A stretch of 64,000 nucleotides of DNA from Macrostomum lignano. Its lineage: Eukaryota. Shown one piece after another: positions 1-64,000 of the stretch. A model generated the notes under the pieces. It did no database searches. It was not told the DNA's origin and saw only the letters and a list, made by a program, of their open reading frames with translations. The stretch lies in NCBI GenBank assembly GCA_002269645.1, contig NIVC01001774.1, positions 1 to 64,000 on the forward strand. Direction: 5' to 3'. The position numbers and the translations under genes are program-made. How positions within the stretch are numbered: position 1 is the first letter of the stretch; every line of letters begins with the position of its first letter.

Positions 1-94
1 TTTTGTATTGGAGTGCTTAGAAAGGAGTGCTCAGTCTGTATGGTAAGGAGTTATGATACAAGCCATGAAATATTAGTACAACAGTTGGGATGGA

Positions 95-350
95 ATGCTC
101 GGAATAGAGTACTTAGAGAGGAGAGTGCCCAGGAAGGATGGAATGCTCAGAATAGAGTGCTTAGAGAGGAGAGTGCTCAGGCAGGATGAGATGCTTGGAA
201 TAGAGTGCTTAGAGAGGAGAGTGCTCAGGCAGGATGATGCTTGGAATAGAGTGCTTAGAGAGGAGAGTGCTCAGGCAGGATGAGATGCTTGGAATAGAGT
301 GCTTAGAGAGGAGAGTGCTCAGGCAGGATGAGATGCTTGGAATAGAGCTC
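95..350. repeat. 48-bp minisatellite (also 11603-11858)
   Basis: Unit GAGAGGAGAGTGCTCAGGCAGGATGAGATGCTTGGAATAGAGTGCTTA; 16-aa periodicity in the overlapping ORFs. Confidence 0.95.
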
Positions 351-1174: not shown

Positions 1175-1325
1175 GTGAAGTTTGGAGCTTGTGAAGTTTG
1201 GAGTTTGTGGAGTTTGAAGTTTGTGGAGTTTGGAGCTTGTGAAGTTTGGAGTTTGTGGAGTTTGGAGTTTGTGGAGTTTGGAGCTTGTGAAGTTTGGAGT
1301 TTGTGGAGTTTGGAGTTTGTGGAGT
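1175..1325. repeat. GAGTTTG/GAGCTTGTG compound simple repeat (also 12687-12837; expanded to ~1.6 kb at 17015-18597)
   Basis: Direct reading; produces the spurious KLHKLQTPQ/SLWSLE ORFs. Confidence 0.95.
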
Positions 1326-2074
1326 CTCAATCTTGGGAAGTCTCAATCTTGGGAAGTCTCAATCTTGTGAAACGACCGTTCCTTATCTACTACACTTCAT
1401 CGCCCCATAGTCCCAACCTAAGCCTAAACTGCAGTGTACGCTCATAAATTCACTTTGCCCCTGGTCCTTTCTCTCTAACCATTTCATTCTCCATTGCAAG
1501 TATTACGAGCGTAATTGCAGATTTCGCGTCCTGACAAATAAATAAAATTTATGAAAAATCACTGCCAATCATTTCGATTGTTAAAATATGAGCGCAGTCT
1601 GCTCACTCCGATTCAGCAGAGTTTAAATTAGATCGACATGTCGAAGTGATGTAATAAGGAATCATATAGTTTATTTCTGTGTTGCATCACAATAAAGCCA
1701 TTAAACAATAGAAAAAGCACAATACTAACAAAGATTCGAATTGGTTTGTTCAATTAGCTGAGTAGCATCAGTAGGAATTACGTGCGTGTACGAGAATTGA
1801 TAAAGACTGACAAAACAATAGTATAGTTACCACAATCAATGCCTGCGTTGAAAAAACTATTTTGATTGCCTAATTCTCAGGAAAGCTATCAGAATCACGT
1901 GACGCAGCCAAGATTTCAAGTCAGTTACAGCAAACAACCTAAAAACCCTGGCCAACTTTGCGCCCCTTAAGTTTTTTAACTAAATTTTATTGCCCAAATG
2001 CTGACGCACACTAGGTCTACGAAACAATAAAGTTATCTGTCACATTGATAAACTTAAGATGAGTTTGTCCCGTG

Positions 2075-2400
2075 CCCTGCCTCTTCTCTACCCCATTTTA
2101 TTGTCCTACAGTCACACCTTAAGTCTAAACCGCAATGTACATTATCTGCCGTCTCCCGCCTTGATAAATGTACGCTCGTACATCAAATCAGTCCTGTCCC
2201 AGTCTCTTCTCTATCCAATTTTATTGCCCTACAGTCACACCCCTAAGTCTAAACCGCAATGTACATTACCTGCCGTCTCCCGCCTTGATAAATGTACGCT
2301 CGTACATCAAATCAGTCCTGTCCCAGTCTCTTCTCTATCCAATTTTATTGCCCTACAGTCACACCCCTAAGTCTAAAACGCAAAGTACATTACCTGCCGC
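2075..2400. repeat. ~124-bp tandem repeat, ~3 units (about 2 units at 13585-13790, about 9 at 19330-20390)
   Basis: CTACAGTCAC recurs at 2106, 2229 and 2353. Confidence 0.92.
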
Positions 2401-3463
2401 CTTGATCGATTTACATCAAATCGGTTCTGGCCCTGTCTTTTCTCTACCCTATATTATTGCTCTATAGTCACACACTATAGTCATCTCCTGGTTGCCTCAA
2501 TTGCGATCTAGAAGGGGTAGGTTTTAATGGTCAGCTGACTCTCCATGATAAAACTATAATTTGTGTCACATGAGCTCTGGAAACGAAAAAATCTATAATT
2601 AGACCTTTTGAGTAGCTAGATTGCCCTAAAAGTGTCGAAAACGTGCAATTAATTCACGACGTATTATTTACTGCTTTTGGCAGTAGCAGATCTGGGAGTG
2701 TAAAGGGGGTGTCAGCTGACCCGTTTTAAGGAGAGCAAACCTTAGCAGCCAATTTGACAGAAACTGTATACAGCAATTCAGTAACAGCTGGTTAATTGTA
2801 ACAAAAAAGCATCGACTAGAATCAGGAATGAGCAGTCAACAATAGAGATTGCATGATAAAAAAATGAGTGTTGAAATAAAAAACGGCAATCAAGGTCTCC
2901 GCACATTCGTATGGGAAATGAATCAGAGCCGGTAGACGCATGGCTTTGGTGGAATTATTCGCATTCTTGGAAATCAAAACAGTGTTAATCCGTTTTTATC
3001 AACAAGTAGACAGATGCAAGCAGCGGAAAAGAGGGATGAGAAGTGCGGAACAGCAGAAGAAAATGCGATATTAAAAAACACTAGAAGAAAAGTAAGACGT
3101 TGATACTAACGATTTACATAGGAGAAAAAAGCAATTAAAAAACGCGAGCTCAATACTATAAGTACTTGTAAAGCAAAACAGCAACGAAAAGCGATAAAAG
3201 GAGTGTTCGAAAAACAGATTCAATTACTCCGTCTTGAGTAACAACAACGCTCAACAGGAACAAGAGAGAGAGACAGAGAAAATATGCATCGTTTTGACTT
3301 GAATACTATCGTTATAGTGCAAAAGTGTGTGCGTGCCAGATTACACTACTTATAGTAGGCAAGTAGCACATTTTAGATGTTTATTAGAAGATTACGAAAA
3401 TACGACAATATGTTTTTGTGTACTTTTTTAGGCCAAAAAAGCATTTTGTTCGAAAACTTCGAA

Positions 3464-3995
<532 letters not shown>

Positions 3996-4025
3996 TCAAA
4001 TTGTCCAAGAAATTCCACTCCGCAG

Positions 4026-11195: not shown

Positions 11196-11995
11196 TTATT
11201 CAGCAGAGCCGCCAGGAGCTCGTGCCTTGCTAGACTCAGCCAGGTGCTGGCCCCTGTCAATCTTGATCATCGGGCTCACGTATTCCGTCAGATCGGCAGC
11301 CACGTGAATCTCGTCGTCCTTCTTATCGGTCGAAGCGGTCGGATTTTTTTCGATCTTTTCTGTTTTAGCTGAAGAAGATGCGGCCGCAGCAGCCGCAGCC
11401 GCTGCTGTCACATCCTCGGAGGCCGCGCCGCTGAGAGCCATGTCCAAGGGGTTCGAGTACAGAGTGACATCGGCCGCGATCATGAAGTCTGGGGAGTAGA
11501 ACAGTTGCTTTTGTATTGGAGTGCTTAGAAAGGAGTGCTCAGTCTGTATGGTAAGGAGTTATGATACAAGCCATGAAATATTAGTACAACAGTTGGGATG
11601 GAATGCTCGGAATAGAGTACTTAGAGAGGAGAGTGCCCAGGAAGGATGGAATGCTCAGAATAGAGTGCTTAGAGAGGAGAGTGCTCAGGCAGGATGAGAT
11701 GCTTGGAATAGAGTGCTTAGAGAGGAGAGTGCTCAGGCAGGATGAGATGCTTGGAATAGAGTGCTTAGAGAGGAGAGTGCTCAGGCAGGATGAGATGCTT
11801 GGAATAGAGTGCTTAGAGAGGAGAGTGCTCAGGCAGGATGAGATGCTTGGAATAGAGCTCTTAAACATCCTTTCGTGGTCAGCAATCTTAATAAGATATA
11901 AAAAATGTAGTCAACCTTGACAACAAAAAAAGAGTTTACTTAGGCAAGTCCCGCAAAGCAAACACAAAACTACAAGGAAAGCACTCACCGTCCAT
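11196..11995 (-). CDS. Putative small orphan protein (~99 aa, MDDFMIAADVTLYSNPL...GGSAE) with an internally duplicated motif
   Basis: Model join(11989-11995, 11196-11488): ATG GAC G|GTGAGT donor, then a phase-1 acceptor ctactccccag|AC. In-frame stop upstream of the ATG, GC-rich coding-like codon usage, 48-bp minisatellite in the intron. No family recognised; the 3' end could instead splice at TAC|GTGAGC. Confidence 0.5.
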
Positions 11996-14853
11996 TGCAA
12001 CAGCTGCTAGCGCCTATAAAAACTACGCTGATTTTCAGGTATACGAGCTAGACAGCGTCTCGGGTAGCAACTAAATTTTGTCTCTTTATATGCGATGGAG
12101 AGCGAGGCTGCGAAGAGACGTCAGGTAGGTGGACGGAACGCTTCTAGATTCCTCTCACCTTGCGTCCTCGTCTTCCCTAACCTCCGCCCGACCCTCCGGC
12201 CGATCATTTCTCCCCCCATCGGAGCGTGTTATTTTCGAAGCGGCCCGGGCGTTGCTAGGGGCAACGTCCCCTTGGACTCGGTACTCGAGTTCAGGCGAGG
12301 CAAGACAGGTGCAAAAGAGATGAGAAGAAGCGAGAGGCAGGCCAGGAAGACTGGAACTGTCTACCCGAATCCCATGGAATATTTGACTCACCTGTCGTGT
12401 CTTGGCTTGATTAGGCCGGCTCTACAAGGCGATTCGAGAGGAACTTCTAATTAACAAAATCCCTAGGGGCCAAAATTCGGCTGGAGCTTTCGAGTGACGA
12501 ATTTCTGTTTTGGCGCCTTACCGGCCCCTAGCCGGTATATACTTTATACGGCCCCTAAATTTACATAATTTACAAAAATTATGTAAATTTATCTCTGCTC
12601 CCTTCTGGATCGCTTTTACAAGCTCGAATCAGTAGCTTCAGTTTTGCGCTAGCGGAAGTGACTAACTAGCAAGAGCTTTCGACGCTGTGAAGTTTGGAGC
12701 TTGTGAAGTTTGGAGTTTGTGGAGTTTGAAGTTTGTGGAGTTTGGAGCTTGTGAAGTTTGGAGTTTGTGGAGTTTGGAGTTTGTGGAGTTTGGAGCTTGT
12801 GAAGTTTGGAGTTTGTGGAGTTTGGAGTTTGTGGAGTCTCAATCTTGGGAAGTCTCAATCTTGGGAAGTCTCAATCTTGTGAAACGACCGTTCCTTATCT
12901 ACTACACTTCATCGCCCCATAGTCCCAACCTAAGCCTAAACTGCAGTGTACGCTCATAAATTCACTTTGCCCCTGGTCCTTTCTCTCTAACCATTTCATT
13001 CTCCATTGCAAGTATTACGAGCGTAATTGCAGATTTCGCGTCCTGACAAATAAATAAAATTTATGAAAAATCACTGCCAATCATTTCGATTGTTAAAATA
13101 TGAGCGCAGTCTGCTCACTCCGATTCAGCAGAGTTTAAATTAGATCGACATGTCGAAGTGATGTAATAAGGAATCATATAGTTTATTTCTGTGTTGCATC
13201 ACAATAAAGCCATTAAACAATAGAAAAAGCACAATACTAACAAAGATTCGAATTGGTTTGTTCAATTAGCTGAGTAGCATCAGTAGGAATTACGTGCGTG
13301 TACGAGAATTGATAAAGACTGACAAAACAATAGTATAGTTACCACAATCAATGCCTGCGTTGAAAAAACTATTTTGATTGCCTAATTCTCAGGAAAGCTA
13401 TCAGAATCACGTGACGCAGCCAAGATTTCAAGTCAGTTACAGCAAACAACCTAAAAACCCTGGCCAACTTTGCGCCCCTTAAGTTTTTTAACTAAATTTT
13501 ATTGCCCAAATGCTGACGCACACTAGGTCTACGAAACAATAAAGTTATCTGTCACATTGATAAACTTAAGATGAGTTTGTCCCCGTGCCCTGCCTCTTCT
13601 CTACCCCATTTTATTGTCCTACAGTCACACCCTTAAGTCTAAACCGCAATGTACATTACCTGCCGTCTCCCGCCTTGATAAATGTACGCTCGTACATCAA
13701 ATCAGTCCTGTCCCAGTCTCTTCTCTATCCAATTTTATTGCCCTACAGTCACACCCCTAAGTCTAAAACGCAAAGTACATTACCTGCCGCCTTGATCGAT
13801 TTACATCAAATCGGTTCTGGCCCTGTCTTTTCTCTACCCTATATTATTGCTCTATAGTCACACACTATAGTCATCTCCTGGTTGCCTCAATTGCGATCTA
13901 GAAGGGGTAGGTTTTAATGGTCAGCTGACTCTCCATGATAAAACTATAATTTGTGTCACATGAGCTCTGGAAACGAAAAAATCTATAATTAGACCTTTTG
14001 AGTAGCTAGATTGCCCTAAAAGTGTCGAAAACGTGCAATTAATTCACGACGTATTATTTACTGCTTTTGGCAGTAGCAGATCTGGGAGTGTAAAGGGGGT
14101 GTCAGCTGACCCGTTTTAAGGAGAGCAAACCTTAGCAGCCAATTTGACAGAAACTGTATACAGCAATTCAGTAACAGCTGGTTAATTGTAACAAAAAAGC
14201 ATCGACTAGAATCAGGAATGAGCAGTCAACAATAGAGATTGCATGATAAAAAAATGAGTGTTGAAATAAAAAACGGCAATCAAGGTCTCCGCACATTCGT
14301 ATGGGAAATGAATCAGAGCCGGTAGACGCATGGCTTTGGTGGAATTATTCGCATTCTTGGAAATCAAAACAGTGTTAATCCGTTTTTATCAACAAGTAGA
14401 CAGATGCAAGCAGCGGAAAAGAGGGATGAGAAGTGCGGAACAGCAGAAGAAAATGCGATATTAAAAAACACTAGAAGAAAAGTAAGACGTTGATACTAAC
14501 GATTTACATAGGAGAAAAAAGCAATTAAAAAACGCGAGCTCAATACTATAAGTACTTGTAAAGCAAAACAGCAACGAAAAGCGATAAAAGGAGTGTTCGA
14601 AAAACAGATTCAATTACTCCGTCTTGAGTAACAACAACGCTCAACAGGAACAAGAGAGAGAGACAGAGAAAATATGCATCGTTTTGACTTGAATACTATC
14701 GTTATAGTGCAAAAGTGTGTGCGTGCCAGATTACACTACTTATAGTAGGCAAGTAGCACATTTTAGATGTTTATTAGAAGATTACGAAAATACGACAATA
14801 TGTTTTTGTGTACTTTTTTAGGCCAAAAAAGCATTTTGTTCGAAAACTTCGAA

Positions 14854-16344
<1,491 letters not shown>

Positions 16345-16374
16345 CTGCGGGTGCGCGGAGATGGGAATCCAGTC

Positions 16375-16988
16375 AAGCTCCAATCCCTGCACTCAGCTCA
16401 GATCCCTGCACTCAGCTCCAATCCCTGCACTCAGCTCCAATCCCTGCACTCAGCTCCAATCCCTGCACTCAGCTCCAATCCCTGCACTCAGCTCCAATCC
16501 CTGCACTCAGCTCCAATCCCTGCACTCAGCTCCAATCCCTGCACTCAGCTCCAATCCCTGCACTCAGCTCCAATCCCTGCACTCAGCTCCAATCCCTGCA
16601 CTCAGCTCCAATCCCTGCACTCAGCTCCAATCCCTGCACTCAGCTCCAATCCCTGCACTCAGCTCCAATCCCTGCACTCAGCTCCAATCCCTGCACTCAG
16701 CTCCAATCCCTGCACTCAGCTCCAATCCCTGCACTCAGCTCCAATCCCTGCACTCAGCTCCAATCCCTGCACTCAGCTCCAATCCCTGCACTCAGCTCCA
16801 ATCCCTGCACTCAGCTCCAATCCCTGCACTCAGCTCCAATCCCTGCACTCAGCTCCAATCCCTGCACTCAGCTCCAATCCCTGCACTCAGCTCCAATCCC
16901 TGCACTCAGCTCCAATCCCTGCACTCAGCTCCAATCCCTGCACTCAGCTCCAATCCCTGCACTCAGCTCCAATCCCTGCACTCAGCTT
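16375..16988. repeat. 19-bp minisatellite CAGCTCCAATCCCTGCACT, ~32 near-perfect units (shorter copy 23058-23220, followed by a related 22-bp array 23221-23436)
   Basis: Direct reading; 19-aa and 22-aa periodicities in the overlapping ORFs. Confidence 0.95.
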
Positions 16989-19900
16989 CAGATCCCAGAG
17001 CTTTCGACGCTGTAAAGTTTGGAGCTTGTGGAGTTTGGAGCTTGTGGAGTTTGGAGCTTCTGGAGTTTAGAGCTTCTGGAGTTTGGAGCTTGTGAAGTTT
17101 GAAGCTTGTGAAGCTTGAAGCTTGTGAAGCTTGAAGCTTGTGAAGCTTGAAGCTTGTGAAGCTTGAAGCTTGTGAAGCTTGAAGCTTGTGAAGCTTGAAG
17201 CTTGTGGAGTTTGGAGCTTGTGGAGTTTGAAGCTTGTGAAGCTTGGAGCTTGTGGAGTTTGGAGCTTGTGGAGTTTGGAGCTTGTGGAGTTTGGAGCTTG
17301 TGGAGTTTGGAGCTTGTGGAGTTTGGAGCTTGTGGAGTTTGGAGCTTGTGGAGTTTGGAGCTTGTGGAGTTTGGAGCTTGTGGAGTTTGGAGCTTGTGGA
17401 GTTTGGAGCTTGTGAAGCTTGAAGCTTGTGGAGCTTGGAGCTTGTGGAGTTTGGAGCTTGTGGAGTTTGGAGCTTGTGGAGTTTGGAGCTTGTGGAGTTT
17501 GGAGCTTGTGGAGTTTGGAGCTTGTGGAGTTTGGAGCTTGTGGAGTTTGGAGCTTGTGAAGCTTGAAGCTTGTGGAGTTTGGAGCTTGTGGAGTTTGAAG
17601 CTTGTGGAGTTTGGAGCTTGTGGAGTTTGAAGCTTGTGAAGCTTGGAGCTTGTGGAGTTTGGAGCTTGTGGAGTTTGGAGCTTGTGGAGTTTGGAGCTTG
17701 TGGAGTTTGGAGCTTGTGGAGTTTGGAGCTTGTGGAGTTTGGAGCTTGTGGAGTTGAAGTTTATGGAGTTTGGAGTTTGGAGCTTGTGGAGTTTGGAGCT
17801 TGTGGAGTTTGTAGCTTGTGAAGTTTGGAGCTTGTGGAGTTTGGAGCTTGTGGAGTTTGGAGCTTGTGAAGTTTGAAGCTTGTGAAGCTTGAAGCTTGTG
17901 AAGCTTGAAGCTTGTGAAGCTTGAAGCTTGTGAAGCTTGAAGCTTGTGGAGTTTGGAGCTTGTGGAGTTTGAAGCTTGTGAAGCTTGGAGCTTGTGGAGT
18001 TTGGAGCTTGTGGAGTTTGGAGCTTGTGGAGTTTGAAGTTTGTGGAGTCTGGAGCTTGTGGAGTTTGGAGCTTGTGGAGTTTGGAGCTTGTGGAGTTTGA
18101 AGTTTGTGGAGTTTGGAGCTTGTGGAGTTTGGAGCTTGTGAAGCTTGAAGCTTGTGGAGTTTGGAGCTTGTGGAGTTTGAAGCTTGTGAAGCTTGGAGCT
18201 TGTGGAGTTTGGAGCTTGTGGAGTTTGGAGCTTGTGGAGTTTGGAGCTTGTGGAGTTTGGAGCTTGTGGAGTTTGGAGCTTGTGGAGTTTGGAGCTTGTG
18301 GAGTTTGGAGCTTGTGGAGTTTGGAGCTTGTGGAGTTTGAAGTTTGTGGAGTTTGGAGTTTGGAGCTTATGGAGTTTGGAGCTTGTGGAGTTTGTAGCTT
18401 GTGAAGTTTGGAGCTTGTGGAGTTTGGAGCTTGTGGAGTTTGGAGCTTGTGGAGTTTGGAGCTTGTGGAGTTTGGAGCTTGTGAAGTTTGGAGCTTGTGG
18501 AGTTTGGAGTTTGTGGAGTTTGGAGTTTGTGGAGTTTGGAGCTAGTGGAGTTTGGAGTTTGTGGAGTTTGGAGTTTGTGGAGTTTGGAGCTTGTGAAGTC
18601 TCAATCTTGGGAAGTCTCAATCTTGTGAAACGACCGTTCCTTCTCTACTACACTTCATCGCCCCATAGTCCCAACCTAAGCCTAAACTGCAGTGTACGCT
18701 CATAAATTCACTTTGCCCCTGGTCCTTTCTCTCTAACCCTTTCATTCTCCATTGCAAGTATTACGAGCGTAATTGCAGATTTCGCGTCCTGGCAAATAAA
18801 TAAAATTTATGAAAAATCACTGCCAATCATTTCGATTGTTAAAATATGAGCGCAGTCTGCTCACTCCGATTCAGCAGAGTTTAAATTAGATCGACATGTC
18901 GAAGTGATGTAATAAGGAATCATATAGTTTATTTCTGTGTTGCATCAGAAGAGAGCCATTAAAAAATAGAAAAAGCACAATACTAACAAAGATTCGAATT
19001 GGTTTGTTCAATTAGCTGAGTAGCATCAGTAGGAATTACGTGCGTGTACGAGAATTAATAAAGACAATAGTATAGTTACCACAATCAATGCCTGCGTTGA
19101 AAAAACTATTTTGATTGCCTAATTGTCAGGAAAGCTATCAGAATCACGTGACGCAGCCAAAGATTTCAAGTCAGTTACAGCAAACAACCTAAAAACCCTG
19201 GCCAACTTTGCGCCCCTTAAGTTTTTTAACTAAATTTTATTGCCCAAATGCTGACGCACACTAGGTCTACGAAACAAATAAAGTTATCTGTCACATTGAT
19301 AAACTTAAGATGAGTTTGTCCCCGTGCCCTGCCTCTTCTCTACCCCATTTTATTGCCCTATAGTCACACCCCTAAGTCTAAACCGCAATGTACATTATCT
19401 GCCGTCTCCCGCCTTGATAAATGTACGCTCGTACATCAAATCAGTCCTGTCCCAGTCTCTTCTCTATCCAATTTTATTGCCCTACAGTCACACCCCTAAG
19501 TCTAAACCGCAATGTACATTATCTGCCGTCTCCCGCCTTAATAAATGTACGCTCGTACATCAAATCAGTCCTGTCCCAGTCTTCTCTATCCAATTTTATT
19601 GACCTACAGTCACAACCCTAAGTCTAAACCGCAATGTAAATTATCTGCCGTCTCCCGCCTTGATAAATGTACGCTCGTACATCAAATCAGTCCTGTCCCA
19701 GTCTTCTCTATCCAATTTTATTGACCTACAGTCACACCCCTAAGTCTAAACCGCAATGTACATTATCTGCCGTCTCCCGCCTTGATAAATGTATGCTCGT
19801 ACATCAAATCAGTCCTGTCCCAGTCTTCTCTACCCCATTTTATTGCCCTATAGTCACACCCCTAAGTCTAAACCGCAATGTACATTATCTGCCGTCTCCC

Positions 19901-21436
19901 GCCTTGATAAATGTACGCTCGTACATCAAATCAGTCCTGTCCCAGTCTTCTCTATCCAATTTTATTGACCTACAGTCACACCCCTAAGTCTAAACCGCAA
20001 TGTACATTACCTGCCGTCTCCCGCCTTGATAAATGTACGCTCGTACATCAAATCAGCCCTGTCCCAGTCTCTTCTCTATCCAATTTTATTGCCCTACAGT
20101 CACACCCCTAAGTCTAAACCGCAATGTACATTACCTGCCGTCTCCCGCCTTGATAAATGTACGCTCGCACATCAAATCAGTCCTGTCCCAGTCTCTGCTC
20201 TATCCAATTTTATTGCCCTACAGTCACACCCCTAAGTCTAAACAGGAATGTACATTATCTGCCGTCTCCCGCCTTGATAAATGTACGCTCGTACATCAAA
20301 TCAGTCCTGCCCCAGTCTCTTCTCTATCCAATTTTATTGCCCTACAGTCACACCCCTAAGTCTAAACAGCAATGTACATTATCTGCCGCCTTGATCGATT
20401 TACATCAAATCGGTTCTGGCCCTGTCTTTTCTCTACCCTATATTATTGCTCTATAGTCACACACTATAGTCAATTGCGATCTAGAAGGGGTAGGTTTTAA
20501 TGGTCAGCTGACTCTCCATGATAAAACTATAATTTGTGTCACATGAGCTCTGGAAACGAAAAAATCTATAATTAGACCTTTTGAGTAGCTAGATTGCCCT
20601 AAAAGTGTCGAAAACGTGCAATTAATTCACGACGTATTTATTTACTGCTTTTGGCAGTAGCAGATCTGGGAGTGTAAAGGGGGTGTCAGCTGACCCGTTT
20701 TGAGGAGAGCAAACCTTAGCAGCCAATTTGACAGAAACTGTATACAGCAATTCAGTAACAGCTGGTTAATTGTAAGAAAAAGCATCGACTAGAATCAGGA
20801 ATGAGCAGTCAACAATAGAGATTGCATGATAAAAAAATGAGTGTTGAAATAAAAAACTGCAATCAAGGTCTTCGCACATTCGTATGGGAAATGAATCAGA
20901 GCCGGTAGACGCATGGCTTTGGTGGAATTATTCGCATTCTTGGAAATCAAAACAGTGTTAATCCGTTTTTATCAACAAGTAGACAGATGCAAGCAGCGGA
21001 AAAGAGGGATGAGAAGTGCGGAACAGCAGAAGAAAATGCGATATTAAAAAACACTAGAAGAAAAGTAAGACGTTGATACTAACGATTTACATAGGAGAAA
21101 AAAGCAATTAAAAAACGCGAGCTCACTACTATAAGTACTTGTAAAGCAAAACAGCAACGAAAAGCGATAAAAGGAGTGTTCGAAAAACAGATTCAATTAC
21201 TCCGTCTTGAGTAACAACAACGCTCAACAGGAACAAGAGAGAGAGACAGAGAAAATATGCATCGTTTTGACTTGAATACTATCGTTATAGTGCAAAAGTG
21301 TGTGCGTGCCAGATTACACTACTTATAGTAGGCAAGTAGCACATTTTAGATGTTTATTAGAAGATTACGAAAATACGACAATATGTTTTTGTGTACTTTT
21401 TTAGGCCAAAAAAGCATTTTGTTCGAAAACTTCGAA

Positions 21437-33217
<11,781 letters not shown>

Positions 33218-39737: not shown

Positions 39738-42700
39738 ATGGCTACCTCCGGTGCGAGTGGGGATGCTGGTGCCAGCGGATCTGGGTAATTTGCTGTTAGG
39801 CATTTTATTTTATCGATTTATTTCGCCTTTTAGAAGCAGCCTGTTGCATTATTGAAGCAATTTCAAATTTTAGATCTGGGCCTAGCTATCAACCAAATAA
39901 AAGGCTGCAACAGACTCAAGCTCAAGTTGATGAGGCAAGTGGTTAATACTCATATTGTATTAGACTGTTAGAGTTAGTAATTGTTCTTTAGGTACAGCTT
40001 CACGCCTTCCACCTCCCCGCCAGGTTGTCGGTATTATGCGCGTCAACGTTGAAAAAGTGATGCAACGCGATGAAAAGATTTCTGACTTGAATGAGCGAGC
40101 TGGTAAGTGGCTAATTTACACTTTCAAAACCTACCGCTGTGTTCCTACCGTTATGTCTTCTCTATGCATTTGTGTTAGTCCCCTATTTATGATAAACATT
40201 GGCGCTAACCTTCACTTACTTTCGCACTACTGGAAGAATATCTTTGGCCCTGTTAATCAATGTTGTCTTCTTTAATTTTAATTAGCTGTTTCTTTATTTG
40301 TGTTGTCTTTGCTAATTATTGCGTATCCTGCTGTTAACTAGGCCACCCCCTACTTATAGTAGTTTGCAGCTTAAACAGAATCAATCAATGACCAGAAAGC
40401 ATCAGTGAGATTCCTCATCTCATCCTGTACCAGAAGGAATTAATGAGATTTCTCATCTCATCCTGTACCAGAAGAAATTAATGAGATTTCTCATCTCATC
40501 CTGTACCAGAAGGAATTAATGAGATTTCTCATCTCATCCTGTACCGGAAGGAATTAGTGAGATTCCTCATCTCATTCTGTACCGGAAGGAATTAATGAGA
40601 TTTCTCATCTCATTCTGTACCGGAAGGAATTAATGAGATTCCTCATCTCATCCTGTACCAGAAGGAATTAATGATATTCCTCATCTCATCCTGTACCAGA
40701 AGGAATTAATGAGATTTCTCATCTCATCCTGTACCAGAAGGAATTAATGAGATTCCTCATCTCATCCTGTACCGGAAGGAATTAGTGAGATTCCTCATCT
40801 CATTCTGTACCGGAAGGAATTAATGAGATTCCTCATCTCATCCTGTACCAGAAGGAATTAATGAGATTTCTCATCTCATTCTGTACCAGAAGGAATTAAT
40901 GAGATTTCTCATCTCATCCTGTACCAGAAGGAATTAATGAGATTTCTCATCTCATCCTGTACCAGAAGGAATTAGTGAGATTCCTCATCTCATTCTGTTG
41001 ATATTTCTCATCCTGTGCCAGAAGGAGTTGGTAAGGTTTCTCATCTCATCTTGTACCAGAAGGAATTTCTGAGATTCCTCATCTCATCCTGTACCAGAAT
41101 CAGTGAGATTTCTCATCCTGTCCAAGGCAAAACGAATGCCCCTTGTCATTTGCACCAAGACTATAATATGTACCAAGACTAAACCCCGCTTACCGGCTGC
41201 ACCACACGCCTCAGACGCCCTTCAGGCTGGCGCCTCCCGCTTTGAAGCCAGCGCCGGCCGTCTAAAACGAAAGTATTGGTGGCAAAACACCAAGGTACTG
41301 TGCTGCGAGTTGCCCGGCATGACTTTGAGTCGCTAATGCTGATTTAAGAGAGTAGAGAGTTAAATGATTGGCTCGGTTTTTGCGATTTTTTTAAACTACC
41401 AATTTATAAATTTTATCCAATCAACTGATTAAATGAGAATCATTGTTGACTTCCAACCTGCTTGACTATTCTTGGCTAACACCCTCCTAGATCTTCGAAA
41501 ATCGGAATTCCTCAGTTCCTTAAATTAGAATAAGCAGCCAACATCTCATCTCCTCAGTTGCTGGGCCACCCTCTCAGATCCTCAGTTGCTGGTCCACCCT
41601 CTCAGATCCTCAGTTGCTGGTCCAGCCTCTCAGATCCTCAGTTGCTGGTCCAGCCTCTCAGATCCTCAGTTGCTGGTCTAGCCTCCCGGATCCTCAGTTG
41701 CTGGTCCAGTCTCCCAGATCCTCAGTTGCTGGGCCAGCCTCGCAGATCCTCAGTTGCTGGGCCGCCCTTCAGATCCCCAGATTGAGCAACCAACATCGCA
41801 GATCCTAAACAGTAGTTAATTCTGTCCTATAATCGAGAAATTGTGTATGATGCAGCCTTGCAGTACATTGTTTTGCTTCGATTGATTGCATTTTATCAAC
41901 AATTTATACCTGCAATTAGCATGCTCACTGAACAAACCAATATCAATGGTTATTCAGCATAAAGTTCTACACTGATTTGCATTCACTTTTTAATTGCATT
42001 GCATTTTGCCACTAACAGACACTCTGCGCATTGGGACGCAACAATTTTCTAATGTTGCCACCAGAATGAAACGAAAATACTGCTGGCAGAATGCCAAGGT
42101 TGCTCTATGTTTTTTATTTACATATAACATGCTTTTGAGTTTTGCTAGTAAAAAATAAGACCAAATTGTGTGCTGGGTTAACTTTGACAGTAATTACTCG
42201 AAAAGTAACTTATCTAACATTGCGTATATCAATGCACTCGTGCTTCTCAAAAATTTTAACCAGGAATTTTTTATTTTACTTTTATCTGTACCCCGGCGCA
42301 TGTATTTTATGTATGACCTGAATTGTCACGGGAAGTTAACACCAGCTAAAGCCCTACGAAATGTAAAAAAGCATTACAGTTATTTTTCACTCTGAAGATT
42401 TCACAAAATACAGAAATCTTCTATTTAGATTGCGTGGGCTGCCAGCCTCCCAGATCCTCAGTTGCTGGGCCAGCCTCTCAGATCCTCAGTTGCTGGGCCA
42501 GTCTCCCAGATTCTTAGTTGCTGGGCCAGCCTCCCAGTTCCTCAGTTGCTGGGCCAGCCTCTCAGATCCTCAGTTGCTGGGCCAGCCTCTCAGATCCTCA
42601 GTTGCTGGGCCAGCCTCTCAGATCCTCAGTTACTGGGCCAGCCTCCCAGATCCTCAGTTGCTGGTCCAGCCTCCCAGATCCTCAGTTGCTGGTCCAGCCT

Positions 42701-44542
42701 CCCAGATCCTCAGTTGCTGGTCCAGCCTCACAGATCATCAGTTGCTGGTCCAGCCTCCCGGATCCTCAGTTGCTGGTCCAGTCTCCCAGATCCTCAGTTG
42801 CTGGTCCAGCCTCTCAAATCCTCAGTTGCTGGTCCAGCCTCCCAGATCGTCAGTTGCTGGGCCGGCCACCCTCTCAGATTCTCAGTTGCTGGTCCAACCT
42901 CTCAAATCCTCAGTTGCTGGTCCAGCCTCCCAGATCCTTAGTTGCTGGGCCAGCCTCCCAGATCCTCATTATCTGGGCCAGCCTCCCAGAGTGTCAGTTG
43001 CTGGGCCTGCCTCCCAGATCCTCAGTTGCCGGGCCAGCCTCCCAGAGTGTCAGTTGCTGGGCCTGCCTCCCAGATCCTCAGTTGCCGGGCCTGCCTCCCA
43101 GATCCTCAGTTGCCGGGCCAGCCTCCCAGAGTGTCAGTTGCTGGGCCTGCCTCCCAGATCCTCAGTTGCCGGGCCAGCCTCCCAGATCCTCAGTCGGTGG
43201 ACCACCCTCCCAGATCCTCAGTTGCTGGGACGCCCTCCCAAATCCTTAGTTGCTGGGTCAGCCTCCCAGATCTCCAGTTACTGGGCCAGCCTCTCAGATC
43301 CTCAGTTGCTGGGCCAGCCTTCCAGATCCTCAGTTGCTGGGCCAGCCTCCCAGTTCCTCAGTTGCTGGGCCAGCCTCTCAGATCCTCAGTTGCTGGGCCA
43401 GTCTCCCAGATTCTTAGTTGCTGGGCCAGCCTCCCAGTTCCTCAGTTGCTGGGCCAGCCTCTCAGATCCTCAGTTGCTGGGCCAGCCTCTCAGATCCTCA
43501 GTTGCTGGGCCAGCCTCTCAGATCCTCAGTTACTGGGCCAGCCTCCCAGATCCTCAGTTGCTGGTCCAGCCTCCCAGATCCTCAGTTGCTGGTCCAGCCT
43601 CCCAGATCCTGATGCACCTGTAAAAAAGCTTTCATTAGTCTTAGTGCGAAGAAGGAAAAATGGCATATAACAACAAATCCATCTAAAAACGAACAGAAGT
43701 CATGCACTCAGACTTTGCCCCAGTTTGCCAATGTTTTTTTCAATGCTCGTTTGTACTAGCATAATCCGGTTTAACGTGCAACAGTGAGAGTTTTCTGACT
43801 CGCCAATGCTAAATAACAGTATTTGATTTTTGTAAAGTTCCAGGCACATGCAGTACATCTAGTTTAAATTGTTTGTTTCAGATGATGCTCATCATCGGTG
43901 TCATTGTGGTTATCATCATAATCATCATAATCAGTGAGTTCGGCTGGTCCGTTTTTCAGTGGGCTATGACCGAATCGATTTCAGTGGGTTATGACCGATC
44001 CTATTACAGTGTGTTATGACCGATCCTATTACAGTGGGCTATGACCGATCCTATTACAGTGGGCTATGACCGATCCTATTACAGTGGGTTATGACCGATC
44101 CGACTTCAGTGGGTTATGACCGATCCGATTTCAGTGGGTTATGACCGATCCAATTTCAGTGGGTTATGACCGATCCAATTTCAGTGGGTTATGACCGATC
44201 CGATTTCAGTGGGTTATGACCGATCCAATTTCAGTGGGTTATGACCGATCCGATTTCAGTGGGTTATGACCGATCCAATTTCAGTGGGTTATGACCGATC
44301 CGATTTCAGTGGGTTATGACCGATCCGATTTCAGTGGGTTATGACCGATCCAATTTCAGTGGGTTATGACCGATCCGATTTCAGTGGGTTATGACCGATC
44401 CGATTTCAGTGGGTTATGACATTTAACATCAGTCTACTCAAACTGTCACCGCAATAAATTTTCAGTCTCGGTGGTCAGCAGCAACAAAGGCGGCGGCGGC
44501 GGTGGCGGCGGCGGCAGCCCCACATCGGCGCCTGGTCGATAG
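39738..44542 (+). CDS. VAMP: Synaptobrevin/VAMP1-3-type R-SNARE, 131 aa
   Basis: Exons 39738-39784, 39874-39934 (GC donor), 40024-40102, 41215-41294, 43882-43933, 44466-44542 (396 nt). Reads [82 protein letters not shown]: zero-layer Arg and C-terminal TMD. Confidence 0.96.
40400..41110. repeat. 38-bp minisatellite GAATTAATGAGATT(T/C)CTCATCTCATCCTGTACCAGAAG
   Basis: Direct reading; VAMP intron 3; internal ATGAGA/TCTCAT inverted motif. Confidence 0.95.
42019..42098 (+). CDS. VAMP: Alternative (mutually exclusive) VAMP exon 4B
   Basis: aacag|...AAG|gttgct. 80 nt, phase 1 to 0 like exon 41215-41294; encodes [27 protein letters not shown]. Confidence 0.8.
42435..43612. repeat. 28-bp minisatellite family CTCAGATCCTCAGTTGCTGGGCCA(G/C)CCT (also 41552-41775 and 46912-47395)
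   Basis: Direct reading; includes a higher-order ~270-bp duplication at offset 900 (42441 vs 43341). Confidence 0.95.
43960..44420. repeat. 25-bp minisatellite TTCAGTGGGTTATGACCGATCC(G/A)AT
   Basis: Direct reading; fills the last VAMP intron. Confidence 0.95.
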
Positions 44543-45160
44543 AGAATCCGACACGAGAACGGTCTGTAGAAGCTGACAAAAATTTAAATTCTGACAAGTT
44601 AAGCAGTTTGACAGAAAGTCAAAGTATTCAAGCTGCGCTTAGATAATTTCTTTTTCGAGATATTTTGGCACCGTACTTACCTTGCTAATTTAAAGAAAGC
44701 TCTCAGTCTCAGTAATTAATATGTATTAATAGCAATTGCAATAAATGATAAAAACTTTGGAACTAATAATCAAAATATCCTACTGTACATCTGTTCATTA
44801 GTAGTGCTTTTTGCGTATGTATAATTTGTTATTTTCCTTGTCTAAACAGTTTTCTGATTTGGTCACTAATTCCTTTGTTCGTTTAACGCGTGATATGCGG
44901 CATTTTGGCTATTGAGTAGCGTTGGTAAGAGAGGCCTGGTCAGTCTTCCTTCTAAAGAATTTCTAAATAAGCGCTACTGTTCTCAAAAAAGTTGATTTAC
45001 ATAAACATAAACAAGCTTTTCTATACTGTTTGATACATCGGCTTTCTAAAATATAATGCCGAAAAAATTAGACTTTTTTGTGTCTTTAAGTAAATTTATT
45101 TTCAATAATAAATCTGCCTATGATGGGGGTTGAGCATTGTAGATGAAAATATCTCTATAG

Positions 45161-46506
45161 TACGAGGTGTATTCAAAAAGTTCTTTTCGGTGCGCTACAA
45201 AACTGAACACAAAACAACTGGAACTATGAAAACACTGTTAGATTGCTTAACATGATTCTGTCACTCATTCACCGCCAATGTCTTTGCACTTCTGCCAGCG
45301 ATTTACCAGGCCTCTGATTCCGGAACTCACACCACTCGCGTCCGTTTGGCGAACAGCTTGATTGCATGCAGCTTCGATGTGCTCGACGCTGTCAAATCGA
45401 ATGCCCCGAAGGTGCTTCTTCACAGATGGAAATAAGAAGAAGTCGCACGGCGACAAATCAGGCGAATAGGGTGGATGTTAGAGCACTTCCCAGCCCCATT
45501 TGCTCAGGAGTTCCACGACGTTGTGCTTGCGATGTGCTGGCGCATTGTCGTGCAGCAGGATCACGCCAGATTCCAGCAGACCAGGGCGCTTCTTTCGTAT
45601 TGCTGGGCGCAGCTTCTCCTGCAGAATCCACTTGTAGTAGTCCCCATTGACGGTGGTTCCTTGTGGGACTGCCCAGTTCAGCAGGATTCCTTGGGAATCA
45701 AAAAACATGACGTGCATGATCTTTATCGCGCCCTGCTTCCTGATGGCCTTCTGAGGTCTTGGAGAATGTGCTGGAAGCCATTCGGCAGACTGGGCCTTTG
45801 TCTCAGGATCCCAGCTGTAAACCCACGTCTCGTCTCCAGCAACAATTCTTGATAGAAAATCCTCCCCTTCTCGATGGAACCGACGCAGGTGGCTGCTTGA
45901 AGCCAGAGTTCGCTGCATCTTTTGCTCACCTGTCAGCAGGTGTGGCACCCACTTGCAGAACTTTTTCTGTAGGAGAAGACGCTCAGTCAGAATAGTGTGG
46001 ACGCTTCCTACTGACACACCAACGTCTTCTGCCAACTCTTCGCAAGTCCGTCGCCGATCATCATCCAAGAGCTCTTGCACTTTCTTCACAACAGTCTCTT
46101 TGGTTGCAGTCATCGGCCTTCCAGAGCGGCCATTGTCCTCAACGCTCTCTCTTCCCTCAGCGAACAGCCGGTACCATTTTAGAACTGTCTGCTCAGTTGG
46201 TGCACAGTTGCCAAGCACTTGCTGAAGCTCCCTAAACATATCCGGTGGCTTTTTTTCCTTGCAGAAACTGAAACTTCATCAAGCTTCGAACGTCTTGCTT
46301 TGAAAATGATTCAGCCATGGCCAAGAAATTGAGTGGCAGCTGATAGAAATGTTCGCTGCTCTAACATAGTTGCAAACTGAGACTTAAAACCCTAGGAACG
46401 TTTAGGCCATAGACATAACTTGGTAAAATCGCTAAAATTCTGTTTACAACGCTTTCTAAAAATAAATGCCAAAGGACCGAAAAGAACTTTTTGAATAAAC
46501 CTCGTA
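45161..46506 (-). mobile_element. Full-length mariner (DD34D) transposon with a disrupted transposase
   Basis: 28-bp TIRs CGAGGT(G/T)TATTCAAAAAGTTCTTTTCGG (1 mismatch) with TA at 45161-62 and 46505-06. Transposase from ATG 46318: WVPHLL, GDETW, HDNA-34aa-D, HPPYSPDL. +1 frameshift in the A7 run at 46250-56; TAA at 45478-80 just before HPPYSPDL. Confidence 0.97.
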
Positions 46507-46743: not shown

Positions 46744-56635
<9,892 letters not shown>

Positions 56636-60037: not shown

Positions 60038-60776
60038 TCACGATTTAAACAGAATAGAATTGAATTTATTATAAAATGACGGCGACTCTCGAACCGAGCT
60101 CAAATTGGCTGGGACAGTGTGCACCGATTTTAATGTCTGCTGCTGCTGTTGCTGCTGTTGTTGCTTTTGCGGCTGTTTCTTCCCTCCAGACTGGTGCGCA
60201 GCCGCCGATGAAGCCGCAGCTTCAACTAGCGGCTTGGCTGAGACCGGCAGCAGGCCGAACCGCGGCAGCTGCTTGGATTGAACGGTGGCCGCAGGCAGCA
60301 CGGACGGGCCAGCGGGATCCTGGCTCTGAGCCGAGTAGGCGGCAGCTGAGCCGGGCGACACCCGGTGAGCGGCGAACGCTCCCAGCCGGTCGATGCTAGC
60401 CAGCAGGCCGTACAGCGAGCTGCAGGCGTGGGCGTGGCGCACCGCCGACTGGGTCAGCGGGCCGGCCAGAGCCTCCAGGTCGAACGGATCGATGGCCGAC
60501 TCCACCCGGCCAATCAGAGCCTCCAGCTGCCGATTGAACTCGGCATTGGCCGGGCTGTCCTCCCGGCGGGACAGCAGGGCGAACAGGAATCTGAGATCGA
60601 ACAGCAGCTGTGCCAGCTGGTTTGGCGCCAGCTGCTGCTGCTGCGCTGGGCCGCTCTCGGCTGCTGCACCCGATAGCCGGGCTGTCAGGCAGCGGTCCAC
60701 GATGGCCAACAGGCGGTCGGTGAGGCTGGCCAGCAGGTGCTGCAGGCTGGCCCGGCTCAGGGCGTGGCCGCCTCGT
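60038..60776 (-). CDS. COG1: COG1 (conserved oligomeric Golgi subunit 1), terminal exon; upstream exons lie beyond the window
   Basis: cgccgcag| phase-2 acceptor. COG1-like C-terminal motifs RGGHALSR.SL, LAQLLFDLRFL, IDPFDL, LYGLL, LP...RFGLLP; stop at 60038. Confidence 0.75.
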
Positions 60777-60879
60777 CTGCGGCGTGAGAGATTATCATAT
60801 TTATCATATTATTATTGATAATATTTATTATATTATATATTGATAATATTGTTAATATTTATTATTATTGATATTTATC

Positions 60880-61127
60880 ATACGCGAAGGTGTATTCAGC
60901 ACGCCAGTGAAGTATGAGACAGACCAGGCCTAAGGGCTACGGTCTGCGATGCTTCACGCCTGCCCCTATATTCAGCAGGTCAAGGCTGGAGAGGGAGGTC
61001 TGCACCCGCTATTTGCCACTGGCAGCCGCAGACCCCCCCCCCCTCACGCTGTTTCACAAGTCGACCCAGGGTACTCGTCCCCGCGTGTGTTCAAGGCAGA
61101 CCCTAGGGCTGCTGGACAGACTGGGCT
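60880..61127 (+). ncRNA. Candidate HDV-like self-cleaving ribozyme
   Basis: Manual fold: P1 60880-86/61082-88, P3 GGG/CCC around L3 UACUCGU, J1/4 GU, P4 hairpin 61091-61116, J4/2 CAGA(C), imperfect P2 GACCCA/UGGGCU. Confidence 0.6.
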
Positions 61128-61353
61128 CCGACGCTGGCGACCCATCCAGTGGCTTCGGCCGAATTTGGGTATGCGGGTCTGGCTTGCCAGCCTGCAGGCC
61201 GTGGTACTGCTTAACGTACCCCCTAATGCCTAAGGTGTTTGACCGTGCCGATGGGCTGGAAGGCCGGGGGGTTGTCCGGTCGCTAGCGGTCCTTTTCTTT
61301 TTCTTCTTTCCTCTTTCTTTTGTGACTCAGCTCACTCCTTCCCGCTTTCAGCT

Positions 61354-62820
61354 ATGGCGTCATCCGCCTCTTTAACCCCCGCTGAAGCCGGGGCCCCGGC
61401 AACTCCGGCCGGTGACTCTGGCACCAGCGCCGCCCCACCGGGGGCAGATGGGCTTGCCGCCGGCTCGGCTGGTGACATGCCCGCACGCGCAACCGGGCCC
61501 TCCGCTGAAGCCCGACGCACCCGCAACCAACGCCGCAACGAGCGGCGACGGCGACTACGGGGTACTGCGGGCCGGCCACCGGCGGAAGGGGAACCTAGGG
61601 AGGGCGAGGCTGCTGTTGGGCCGAAAGGAACCACAGCAACCCCTGCCCCCCAGGATACAACCCCCGCTGGTGAGCCACCCAGTATACCTGCTACAAGCGC
61701 GGCCGGGCCTTCGGGAACCGCCGCCACCAACTACGCCTCAAAGGTCAAGCTCCAACCGGCGGTCATCGTCTTCGGGGAAGAGCAGGACCTCACGGCCGAC
61801 GAGCTCGACAGTGCCTGGCGCACCATCGATGCTGCGCTCATCGACCAGCTCCTGGCGGGCCGCCCTGTGAGCGTGGTCAAGTCTGCCAAGACCGACGGCT
61901 GCATCTTCATCTGGTGCAGCTCGGAGGAGAGCAGCCGCAATCTACGCGAGCTTCTGCCAAAGCTGAACTGGCCCAAGAAGCTCGGCAAGCTCGTCTTCGC
62001 CAGCGAGGGCGAACGACAGAAGACCCAGCGCTTTCGCGTCTGGATCCCGGCCGGCAGTGCCATTAAGTCCGGAGATCAGCTTAGGCAAATATTGCTAAAG
62101 CTGCACCCCGACCTTAAGGTCAACGGGCTCCTACACCACGCCACTTCCCGCAAGGAGAAGGGGGCTACGGTGATCCTAGGGCTCTCTGATGACTGGGCTA
62201 AGCGCTTGCCGCCTAAGTCCACAATTCATATTGGTCTGACTCAGCTGACCATCCTCCGTTGCGAGGAGCGGAAAGCTGATGAAGCCAAGAATGCCAAAGC
62301 TTCCGAAACCGGAACTGGGGCCCAGGCTCCTCCGGCAAAGAAGCCGAGGCAAACGGCCGATCCTATGCCCGGTAAGGCAGTTCGCGCTGCTGAAACCGGA
62401 AATCGCAATCGCAGACCCGCCAGGAGCACCCGGAGGTCCGGCCTGATCCAGCGCGCGCTGGACCAGGCCAAGAACCTTCGTGCGCATCGTGAGCGGGCCC
62501 GCGCTTCTCGCGCTCCACCCCAACAGCCAGAAGGCCAGACTCTAAGCGGGGAGGCTCCGACCGACTGGTTCGAGTCTGTGACTCACCAGGAGGCTGGCGC
62601 CACCCGCATCGACCTGACCGACGAGGCAGAGGGGACGGGCAGTGACAGCACCGAAGCACGCAGGAGAGGCGACGGTAACGTCCACGCTGGGCTCACGTCC
62701 GCGGAGGACTCCACAGCCACCCTAACTGCTGAGGACGCTGAAACTCCCATGGAGGTCTGCGGGTCACCCACCACTGAAAAGGAGGAGGATGACCTGCTCA
62801 ACGATTCCCCAACTGCGTGA
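61354..62820 (+). CDS. Retrotransposon ORF1 (488 aa; low-complexity ends, central folded domain, no obvious CCHC knuckle)
   Basis: Uninterrupted ORF immediately upstream of the APE-containing ORF2. Confidence 0.88.
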   Translation: MASSASLTPAEAGAPATPAGDSGTSAAPPGADGLAAGSAGDMPARATGPSAEARRTRNQRRNERRRRLRGTAGRPPAEGEPREGEAAVGPKGTTATPAPQDTTPAGEPPSIPATSAAGPSGTAATNYASKVKLQPAVIVFGEEQDLTADELDSAWRTIDAALIDQLLAGRPVSVVKSAKTDGCIFIWCSSEESSRNLRELLPKLNWPKKLGKLVFASEGERQKTQRFRVWIPAGSAIKSGDQLRQILLKLHPDLKVNGLLHHATSRKEKGATVILGLSDDWAKRLPPKSTIHIGLTQLTILRCEERKADEAKNAKASETGTGAQAPPAKKPRQTADPMPGKAVRAAETGNRNRRPARSTRRSGLIQRALDQAKNLRAHRERARASRAPPQQPEGQTLSGEAPTDWFESVTHQEAGATRIDLTDEAEGTGSDSTEARRRGDGNVHAGLTSAEDSTATLTAEDAETPMEVCGSPTTEKEEDDLLNDSPTA

Positions 62821-62822
62821 TA

Positions 62823-64000
62823 ATGATCAGCAACCAGGGAATCCATTGCCTGCAGATTAATCTGCAGCACTGCGTCGCAGCCTCGGTCAACCTTATGCGT
62901 TACGCCGAGCTCGACAAGCCGGGGCTCATCCTCGTCCAGGAACCCTGGACTCTCAGAGGTAAGCCTCAAAACGCCCCTGCTGGCTACAATTGTTTTTATA
63001 CTTACCCTCGCGAGGCCAACCAGCCTCCCAGAGCTTGCATCTTTGCGAGCAAAACGCTCAGTGCGTGGCTCAGATCGGACCTGTCCAACAGGGACATCTG
63101 CGTCATCCAATCCGAGGACCTTCTTCCTGGGAAGACCACCCTCATTGCCTCGGTTTACCTACCAGGCGATGCTGCGGTCGTCCCCAGAGCCCTCGCTACG
63201 CTGGTAGAGCTCTGCTCTGCCAAAAACTACGAGCTCATGGTTGCCGGCGACATCAACGCCCACCACACTCACTGGGGCAGCACTGGCATTAATCAGAGAG
63301 GCGAAGACCTCCTAGCCTACGTTGCCTCTACGACCCTCGAGTTCTGCAACTCTGGGTCCACCCCTACCTTTGACAACGGACGGTGGTCGGAGGTGATCGA
63401 CGCTACGCTCGCAACGCCCAGACTCTACCAGAGTATTGGGGCGTGGCGGGTGCTTCCAGTGTCCTCACTATCGGATCACAAGTTCATCTCCTTCAACCTA
63501 ATGGCCGCGCGTAGCGCAACTCGTGTTATGTGGAGACGGAACGCCAGAAATACGGATTGGGAAACCTTCGGGCTCGCCCTGAAGGAATTCCATCGGTCTC
63601 CTGGCCAACCATCCACGATCACGTCGTGCCGAGAGGCGGATGAGTGCGCGACTGTTTTGACAGAGACGCTAACCGCCGCCTTTGAGGCGTCCTGCCCTTT
63701 AAAAGCCTATAAAGGGAAAAAATCGGCGCCGTGGTGGAATCCCGAGCTCGGCAACCTCCGTCGCAGGGCTAAGAGACTCCACCGCAGAGCAACTAAAACT
63801 AAGAGCCCTGCAGACCAAACCGCCTATCATGAAGCAATTCATGAGTTTAAAAGGCAGGTTAGGAATGCAAAGGCTCAAAAATGGCGACAATACTGTGAGG
63901 AGCTAGAGGGCTCACGCCCCACCTCCAGAGTTGTGAAAGCGCTCACGCTGGACAAAATGTCTAAGCTCTCCTCGGTCAAACGCACCGACGGTACGTCCAC
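62823..64000 (+). CDS. Retrotransposon ORF2, N-terminal part (APE endonuclease and linker; RT expected downstream)
   Basis: Translated by hand, open to the window end: QINLQH, VQEPW, SVYLP, GDINAHH..WGS...N.RG, PTF, IDAT, SDHKFI, PWW..EL..LRR. Absent from the ORF track, presumably because it has no stop. Confidence 0.95.
   Translation, partial: MISNQGIHCLQINLQHCVAASVNLMRYAELDKPGLILVQEPWTLRGKPQNAPAGYNCFYTYPREANQPPRACIFASKTLSAWLRSDLSNRDICVIQSEDLLPGKTTLIASVYLPGDAAVVPRALATLVELCSAKNYELMVAGDINAHHTHWGSTGINQRGEDLLAYVASTTLEFCNSGSTPTFDNGRWSEVIDATLATPRLYQSIGAWRVLPVSSLSDHKFISFNLMAARSATRVMWRRNARNTDWETFGLALKEFHRSPGQPSTITSCREADECATVLTETLTAAFEASCPLKAYKGKKSAPWWNPELGNLRRRAKRLHRRATKTKSPADQTAYHEAIHEFKRQVRNAKAQKWRQYCEELEGSRPTSRVVKALTLDKMSKLSSVKRTDGTS

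Follow-up and report, generated by a model that had tools for sequence, protein, structure and literature searches.

Can one synaptobrevin gene of Macrostomum lignano make two different R-SNAREs by exchanging a single exon? This question is raised by a stretch of 64,000 nucleotides (nt) of contig NIVC01001774.1 (positions 1 to 64,000 of the forward strand; GenBank assembly GCA_002269645.1), hereafter the window, in which the synaptobrevin gene carries two 80-nt versions of its fourth exon, 4A (41215–41294) and 4B (42019–42098), placed one after the other between exons 3 and 5. Judging from the nucleotide sequence and from public annotation, we estimate a probability of about 0.55 that 4A and 4B are a real pair of mutually exclusive exons (MXEs), and 4B is probably an alternative exon.

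Anatomy of the Synaptobrevin Gene

In-silico splicing gave six coding exons on the plus strand, counting 4A or 4B as one. Exon 1 (39738–39784) starts with the ATG and ends at a GTAATT donor, and the deposited protein PAA64201.1 includes its junction. Exon 2 (39874–39934), which was delimited by in-silico splicing and the match to the deposited protein, is followed by a GC-AG intron with the donor GCAAGT. Exon 3 (40024–40102; donor GTAAGT) encodes the N-terminal half of the SNARE motif, in which the zero-layer Arg lies, and ends in phase 1. Exon 4A encodes a canonical C-terminal SNARE half together with the juxtamembrane segment, and 4B is a divergent duplicate of it. The transmembrane segment is encoded by exon 5 (43882–43933; donor GTGAGT), and the luminal tail with the TAG stop of the 131-amino-acid (aa) products by exon 6 (44466–44542).

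Exons 4A and 4B are both bounded by AG and GT (…gcctcAG and GTACTG for 4A; …ctaacAG and GTTGCT for 4B), both accept the G left by exon 3, and both run from phase 1 to phase 0 before exon 5. The intron between them is 724 nt long. When the product containing 4A (isoform A) was searched against the 64-kb window with tblastn, 4B was found at E = 1.6e-5, and neither a third copy of exon 4 nor a copy of any other exon was detected.

Use of 4A alone or 4B alone gives a 131-aa synaptobrevin (isoforms A and B, respectively). Joint inclusion brings a TGA (42067–42069) into frame inside 4B and ends the product at 105 aa, and omission of both leaves a frameshifted open reading frame (ORF) of 139 aa that runs to the TAA at 44644–44646. 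Adjacent position, equal length, equal phase, canonical splice sites, homology, and non-productive joint inclusion or skipping, that is, the sequence hallmarks of MXEs, are all found in this pair. An earlier note on this DNA had described such a pair; its coordinates, the 80-nt length, the phases and both peptides agree exactly with the sequence, and it was right that taking both exons or neither shifts the frame. The reading frame would in this way enforce mutual exclusivity, with a stop in 4B upon double inclusion and a frameshift upon double skipping.

Isoforms A and B and the Segment Encoded by Exon 4

Both isoforms match the Pfam synaptobrevin family PF00957 over profile positions 2–88/89, with 113.6 bits for isoform A and 104.7 bits for isoform B (cut-off 26.4), which bears out the gene model of the earlier note. 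The exon-4-less product matches positions 2–42 only (43.8 bits) and has no membrane anchor. The zero-layer Arg, encoded by exon 3 and shared by both isoforms, aligns with R56 of VAMP2 (rat/human synaptobrevin-2); the transmembrane segment of exon 5 directly follows the basic/aromatic linker, only 23 residues precede the SNARE motif, and there is no longin domain. The gene is a synaptobrevin, that is, a brevin-type R-SNARE.

The alignment of the isoforms to VAMP2 (structures 2kog and 3hd7) extends over the SNARE motif, the linker and the transmembrane segment (E = 6e-34 to 2kog). Exon 4 corresponds to VAMP2 D68–K94, which comprises layers +4 to +8 as well as the basic/aromatic linker next to the membrane, so that the C-terminal SNARE layers, the Trp-Trp position and the Q76–F77 bond fall within this exon, as previously proposed. 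Vertebrate VAMP2 genes are not known to have exon boundaries like those of exon 4.

The alignment also reproduces the residue differences that had been noticed before. At Q76–F77 of VAMP2, 4A has R-F, while 4B has Q-F; at W89, 4B has a Cys, giving Cys-Trp versus the Trp-Trp of 4A. Two further differences of 4B from VAMP2 are Thr at A74 and Met at L84, and its residues at layers +4 to +8 are L, T, F, A, and M. Exon 4B keeps Gly73, Gln76-Phe77 and a KRKY-x-WQN-x-K block, and nine surface positions of the C-terminal half are changed in isoform B compared with isoform A. We infer that layers +5 and +8 would be softened in isoform B, and, judging from these residues, it is plausible that the 4B Cys is palmitoylated and that zippering and toxin sensitivity are changed.

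A transcript with both 4A and 4B would likely be a target of nonsense-mediated mRNA decay (NMD) because its stop lies upstream of two exon junctions. This premature stop, together with a length of 80 nt that guarantees a frameshift, would also suit a regulatory "poison" exon: 4B would join 4A, the TGA at 42067–42069 would down-regulate the gene through NMD, and no second protein would be made. We consider such a role very unlikely for 4B, as an exon of this kind does not need protein conservation, and yet 4B has kept its heptad core and its KRKY-WQN-K block and still aligns with the Pfam profile along its full length.

Age and Constraint of Exon 4B

Exons 4A and 4B are identical at 14 of 27 amino acids and at 55% of nucleotides. 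The proportion of synonymous differences (pS) is 0.78, and that of non-synonymous differences (pN) is 0.37. Because synonymous sites are saturated, the duplication is old. Over the exon-4 segment, the 120 best synaptobrevin matches give an extremely conserved family consensus, ALQxGASQFExxAxKLKRKYWWKNxK, and 4A fits it.

How much of 4B could have been preserved by chance was estimated by simulation. With 36 random differences, the frame stays open with P = 0.30, while an identity of at least 14/27 is retained with P = 1.3e-4. Under a conservative null that is conditioned on the observed divergence and lets the 4B lineage drift neutrally, with synonymous changes only in the 4A lineage, an open frame together with an identity of at least 14 has P = 0.0006–0.005, and an open frame together with a BLOSUM62 score of at least 75 has P ≤ 2e-4. 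Compared with the exon of the nearest outgroup (metatranscriptome proteins P0003/P0004, with an overall identity of 69%), six changes are unique to 4B and three to 4A, and the rates are not significantly different (chi2 = 1). At the Q76 position, the Gln of 4B is ancestral and has been lost by 4A. The GC content of 4B is 0.45, versus 0.32–0.34 in its unique flanks. These results argue that selection on the protein has acted on 4B during most of its existence; its present use would be an extrapolation from that past.

The earlier note had named a decaying duplicate exon as the reading that could undo its proposal. Fresh decay of 4B is contradicted by the saturated pS and by the frame, splice sites and core residues that have been kept. 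The part of this alternative that stands is recent disuse, and a recent loss of 4B use may be compatible with the constraint tests.

A Second Genomic Copy of the Locus

The M. lignano line has 180 Mb of duplicated blocks that are at least 95% identical (PMC5730564), and a second copy of this locus, in which the unique intron sequence has diverged by about 3%, lies on contig NIVC01001587.1 (L016). In this copy, 4A is free of differences (0/80), and 4B remains intact, its two splice sites included; the only change in 4B, from G to A at 42064, is a conservative replacement of Arg by Lys. The true products would be 131 aa at the locus in the window and 129 aa in the second copy. The second copy also has a deletion of 17 nt (41977–41993 of the window, 26–42 nt upstream of the 4B acceptor), and the acceptor and the 25 nt preceding it are unchanged.

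Deposited Proteins and Public Annotation

Two proteins have been deposited for these loci, PAA64201.1 (A0A267ERR5; BOX15_Mlig000270g2), of 139 aa, and PAA66117.1 (A0A267EYT8; BOX15_Mlig025643g1), of 97 aa. Both coding sequences join exon 3 straight to exon 5, which makes the products frameshifted and deprives them of the transmembrane segment. In-silico splicing of exons 1, 2, 3, 5, and 6 reproduces PAA64201.1 exactly, and the annotated gene end, 44646, is the end of this exon-4-skipped ORF; the 97 aa of the second copy correspond to the same skipped structure read from Met41. An alternative first exon and shifted splice sites were also considered for the annotated 139-aa product and rejected; skipping of both exon-4 copies accounts for it exactly. 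The deposited proteins are not the functional SNARE. PAA64201.1 and PAA66117.1 would mislead a SNARE phylogeny, or a study using them as markers, since they lack the membrane anchor and one half of the SNARE motif.

The annotation was based on RNA-seq, with StringTie, TACO (--isoform-frac 0.75), mapped Trinity transcripts, TransDecoder for coding potential, and GenBank filtering (PMC5730564). Exons 1, 2, 3, 5, and 6 and their junctions therefore have transcript support, and the exon-3-to-exon-5 junction has been seen in RNA. The annotation is silent on the use of 4A versus 4B, because products containing 4A are equally absent from it.

Could the exon-4-less mRNA then be the main product, from a gene copy on its way to losing SNARE function? 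The skipped coding sequence is the sole annotation in both copies, the pipeline kept near-major isoforms only (PMC5730564), and the skipped ORF stops in the last exon and would therefore escape NMD that depends on the exon junction complex. Such a product would nevertheless consist of half a SNARE motif and a frameshifted His/Arg-rich tail with no transmembrane segment, and 4A is perfectly canonical and identical between the copies, so that we regard this explanation as highly improbable. As a conjecture, a pipeline that picks the longest ORF might prefer 139 aa to the real 131 aa, and this difference and the escape from NMD together might explain why the skipped product survived the pipeline.

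Is Exon 4B in Use?

Mutually exclusive exons have been predicted systematically by WebScipio-type searches (Pillmann 2011; Hatje 2017), which look for neighbouring exons within one intron, with identical length and frame, amino acid similarity, GT-AG borders, and a length that is no multiple of three (PMC5740500). Every one of these features is found in 4A and 4B. When these criteria were applied to human genes, 1,722 exons were newly predicted, of which 654 (~38%) were validated by RNA-seq junction reads (PMC5740500). Our confidence of about 0.55 starts from a prior of roughly 0.4, taken from this survey, and was raised by the evidence for constraint. The difference from that framework is that validation there needs junction reads to the flanking exons (PMC5740500), while 4A and 4B are known here from sequence.

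Under the explanation we prefer, an old tandem duplication of exon 4 would have left two interchangeable 80-nt exons. Exon 4A is the canonical and probably the major version, and 4B, kept under protein-level selection, most likely replaces 4A in some cells or stages. Isoform B would then be a second 131-aa R-SNARE sharing the N-terminal half, the transmembrane segment and the tail with isoform A, and differing from it in the surface of the helix, in the Thr of layer +5 and the Met of layer +8, and in the Cys-Trp that replaces Trp-Trp at the membrane interface. That 4B is actually used, and that the isoforms differ in function, is what we infer from these features.

Several observations weigh against this explanation. 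Exon 4B is an outlier to the very conserved exon-4 segment of all 120 best synaptobrevin matches. With GTTGCT it also has the weakest donor of the gene, and weak donors suit dead exons too. No transcript or protein containing 4B, and no 4B-like peptide, was found in any of the collections searched: a 4B-centred query shared three 5-mers with none of 5.8 billion proteins in a word search, the 30-aa translation of 4B retrieved canonical synaptobrevins only (31–46% identity) in an exhaustive HMMER search of 1.84 billion representatives, and a protein scan of JGI metagenome contigs was likewise negative. The human validation rate for predicted exons of this kind is low, most of them having remained without validation (PMC5740500). 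In addition, the GenBank annotation of both gene copies carries the exon-3-to-exon-5 product only, which does not discriminate between 4A and 4B, and the two copies are too similar to gauge constraint, with 1 of 80 exon nucleotides versus 17 of 580 intron nucleotides being different.

The outlying sequence, the weak donor, the empty searches, the human figures, and an open frame that chance alone would leave with P = 0.30 are also what one would expect if 4B were a relic, perhaps used in the past and now left out of every mRNA, with protein being made from 4A only. We see this as possible but rather doubtful, because protein similarity, core-layer residues, splice sites and elevated GC persist in 4B despite saturated synonymous sites, 4B is not significantly accelerated in the relative-rate test, and it is intact in the second genomic copy.

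Searches with the complete products gave further negative results. An exact look-up of the 4A- and 4B-containing products (131, 129, 91, and 89 aa) in a 15-billion-sequence collection found 0 of 10 variants. The protein search with isoform B returned no identical or close protein, the best match being metatranscriptome contigs at 69% identity. A DNA pattern for KRKYCWQN had 13 matches in metagenomes, 12 of which were chance matches, and one was an isolated exon-4-like exon (VSKX01088721.1, L005, 1082–1161). This exon is also 80 nt long, runs from phase 1 to phase 0, is bounded by AG and GT, and contains Y-C-W-Q-N; it is identical to 4B at 12 of 26 residues and to 4A at 15 of 26, and no other synaptobrevin exon was found on its 2.27-kb contig. 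A Cys-Trp variant of exon 4 so appears to exist in at least one other organism, and this exon hints that the variant extends beyond M. lignano.

How the Choice Between 4A and 4B Might Be Made

Constitutive donors in the synaptobrevin gene and a neighbouring gene are mostly GTRAGN (n = 10). The donor of 4A (GTACTG) departs from this consensus at +4 and +5, and that of 4B at +3, +4, and +5, and such non-consensus donors would fit regulated exons.

Steric hindrance was rejected as the mechanism of exclusion, in view of the 724-nt intron between 4A and 4B, and incompatibility of U12 and U2 sites was rejected as well, all sites being GT-AG or GC-AG. RNA pairing of the docking/selector type was also sought in the region, and no convincing candidate was found. 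The 4B acceptor region, CCACTAACAG/ACACTCTG (42009–42026), is complementary at 15 of 18 positions to three variant units of a 28-nt minisatellite (42987–43004, 43043–43060, and 43127–43144). By our own arithmetic, about 27 inverted seeds of nine nt are expected by chance in this 3.8-kb region, so that the match is within chance expectation and probably due to chance, but it could mask the 3′ splice site of 4B.

The C-terminal SNARE layers and the interface region are thought to pass the force of zippering to the membrane. Isoforms A and B might be two v-SNAREs of one gene that share the "priming" half and differ in the "fusion-triggering" half and the interface, where the Cys-Trp of isoform B might be acylated, each serving different cell types or vesicle classes. 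We consider this specific division of labour unlikely as it stands, although, if true, it would offer a natural experiment for studying the tuning of fusion by C-terminal zippering and by the juxtamembrane linker. If 4B is used, this would be, to our knowledge, the first synaptobrevin gene found to swap its C-terminal SNARE layers and the Trp motif of the interface by splicing. Transgenesis is possible in M. lignano (PMC5730564), which would make the idea about 4B testable in vivo.

Related Splicing Systems

The closest well-studied precedent is exon 5a/5b of vertebrate SNAP-25. In this neuronal SNARE gene, too, two tandem exons lie close together, and one or the other must be chosen; the swap spans the end of a SNARE motif and the anchoring region, and alters the context of palmitoylated Cys residues (PMC2581893). 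In contrast to synaptobrevin, SNAP-25 is a Qbc-SNARE and not an R-SNARE, and its isoforms differ at 9 of 39 residues versus 13 of 27 for 4A and 4B. Isoform use, a developmental switch and knock-in phenotypes have been demonstrated for SNAP-25, whereas 4A and 4B are candidates from genomic sequence.

Other invertebrate synaptobrevin genes may contain the same kind of event. RefSeq isoforms of the gastropods Biomphalaria and Physella and of the oyster Ostrea (pairs P0008/P0018, P0038/P0112, and P0086/P0063) differ in the transmembrane exon only (MMIILGAIIG… versus MWLILIGVVVV…), which suggests a second, independent tandem exon pair in molluscs. Synaptobrevin gene models of arthropods (P0005, P0006, P0010, P0032, P0044, P0049, and P0081; Ephemera, Frankliniella, Argiope, Trichonephila, Armadillidium, and Orchesella, that is, a mayfly, thrips, spiders, a woodlouse, and a springtail) contain two successive copies of the exon-3 segment, the second with VVDIMRTNVEKV…, and these look like mutually exclusive exons that were mis-annotated as jointly included. 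These pairs belong to the same gene family, and their recurrence speaks for the reading of 4A and 4B as such a pair, but they concern exon 3, that is, the N-terminal SNARE half, or the transmembrane exon instead of exon 4. Variation in the exon-4 segment was seen in 0 of the 120 best synaptobrevin matches. We found no report in the literature of mutually exclusive exons in any synaptobrevin gene, and none for the M. lignano gene.

Repeats and Neighbouring Genes

The introns of the synaptobrevin gene are largely filled by minisatellites with units of 38, 28, and 25 nt. A 38-nt array (40391–41117) occupies most of the intron upstream of 4A, a 28-nt array lies between 4A and 4B (41544–41780), another 28-nt array of about 42 copies lies between 4B and exon 5 (42441–43610), and a further array is present at 43954–44420. 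The 28-nt unit thus flanks 4B on both sides, and it recurs downstream of the gene, at ~46.9–47.7 kb. The abundance of intron minisatellites fits the figure of 15% simple and tandem repeats for the genome (PMC5730564). Elsewhere in the window, a unit of ~4 kb is present three times in the first 24 kb (1–4001, 11509–15388, and 18420–21962; 95–99% identity), and nearly identical ORFs of 157 aa are found at 15919–16392 and 22605–23078.

About 1 kb downstream of the synaptobrevin gene, the minus strand carries a mariner-like transposase remnant (45478–46239) with Pfam Transposase_1 and HTH_32 matches. It is followed by an intermediate-filament gene of seven exons on the minus strand (50138–56635), which corresponds to PAA64202.1 (548 aa). 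M. lignano has several intermediate-filament paralogues with 57–73% identity to PAA64202.1, and no synaptobrevin exon was found within 10 kb of the locus of one of them (L018). A weak Rfam tRNA match (31.9 bits; 53783–53852, plus strand) in an intron of the intermediate-filament gene was not called by ARAGORN and may be a tRNA-derived repeat. Other neighbours are a spondin-like gene at 3.9–8.9 kb on the plus strand, with TSP1_spondin and cystine-knot matches, a PHTF-like gene at 28–33 kb on the minus strand, with a PHTF1-2_N match at 32351–32707, and, at the end of the window, a gene with VPS51/Exo84_N domains on the minus strand (60038–64000), the annotated product of which has 940 aa.

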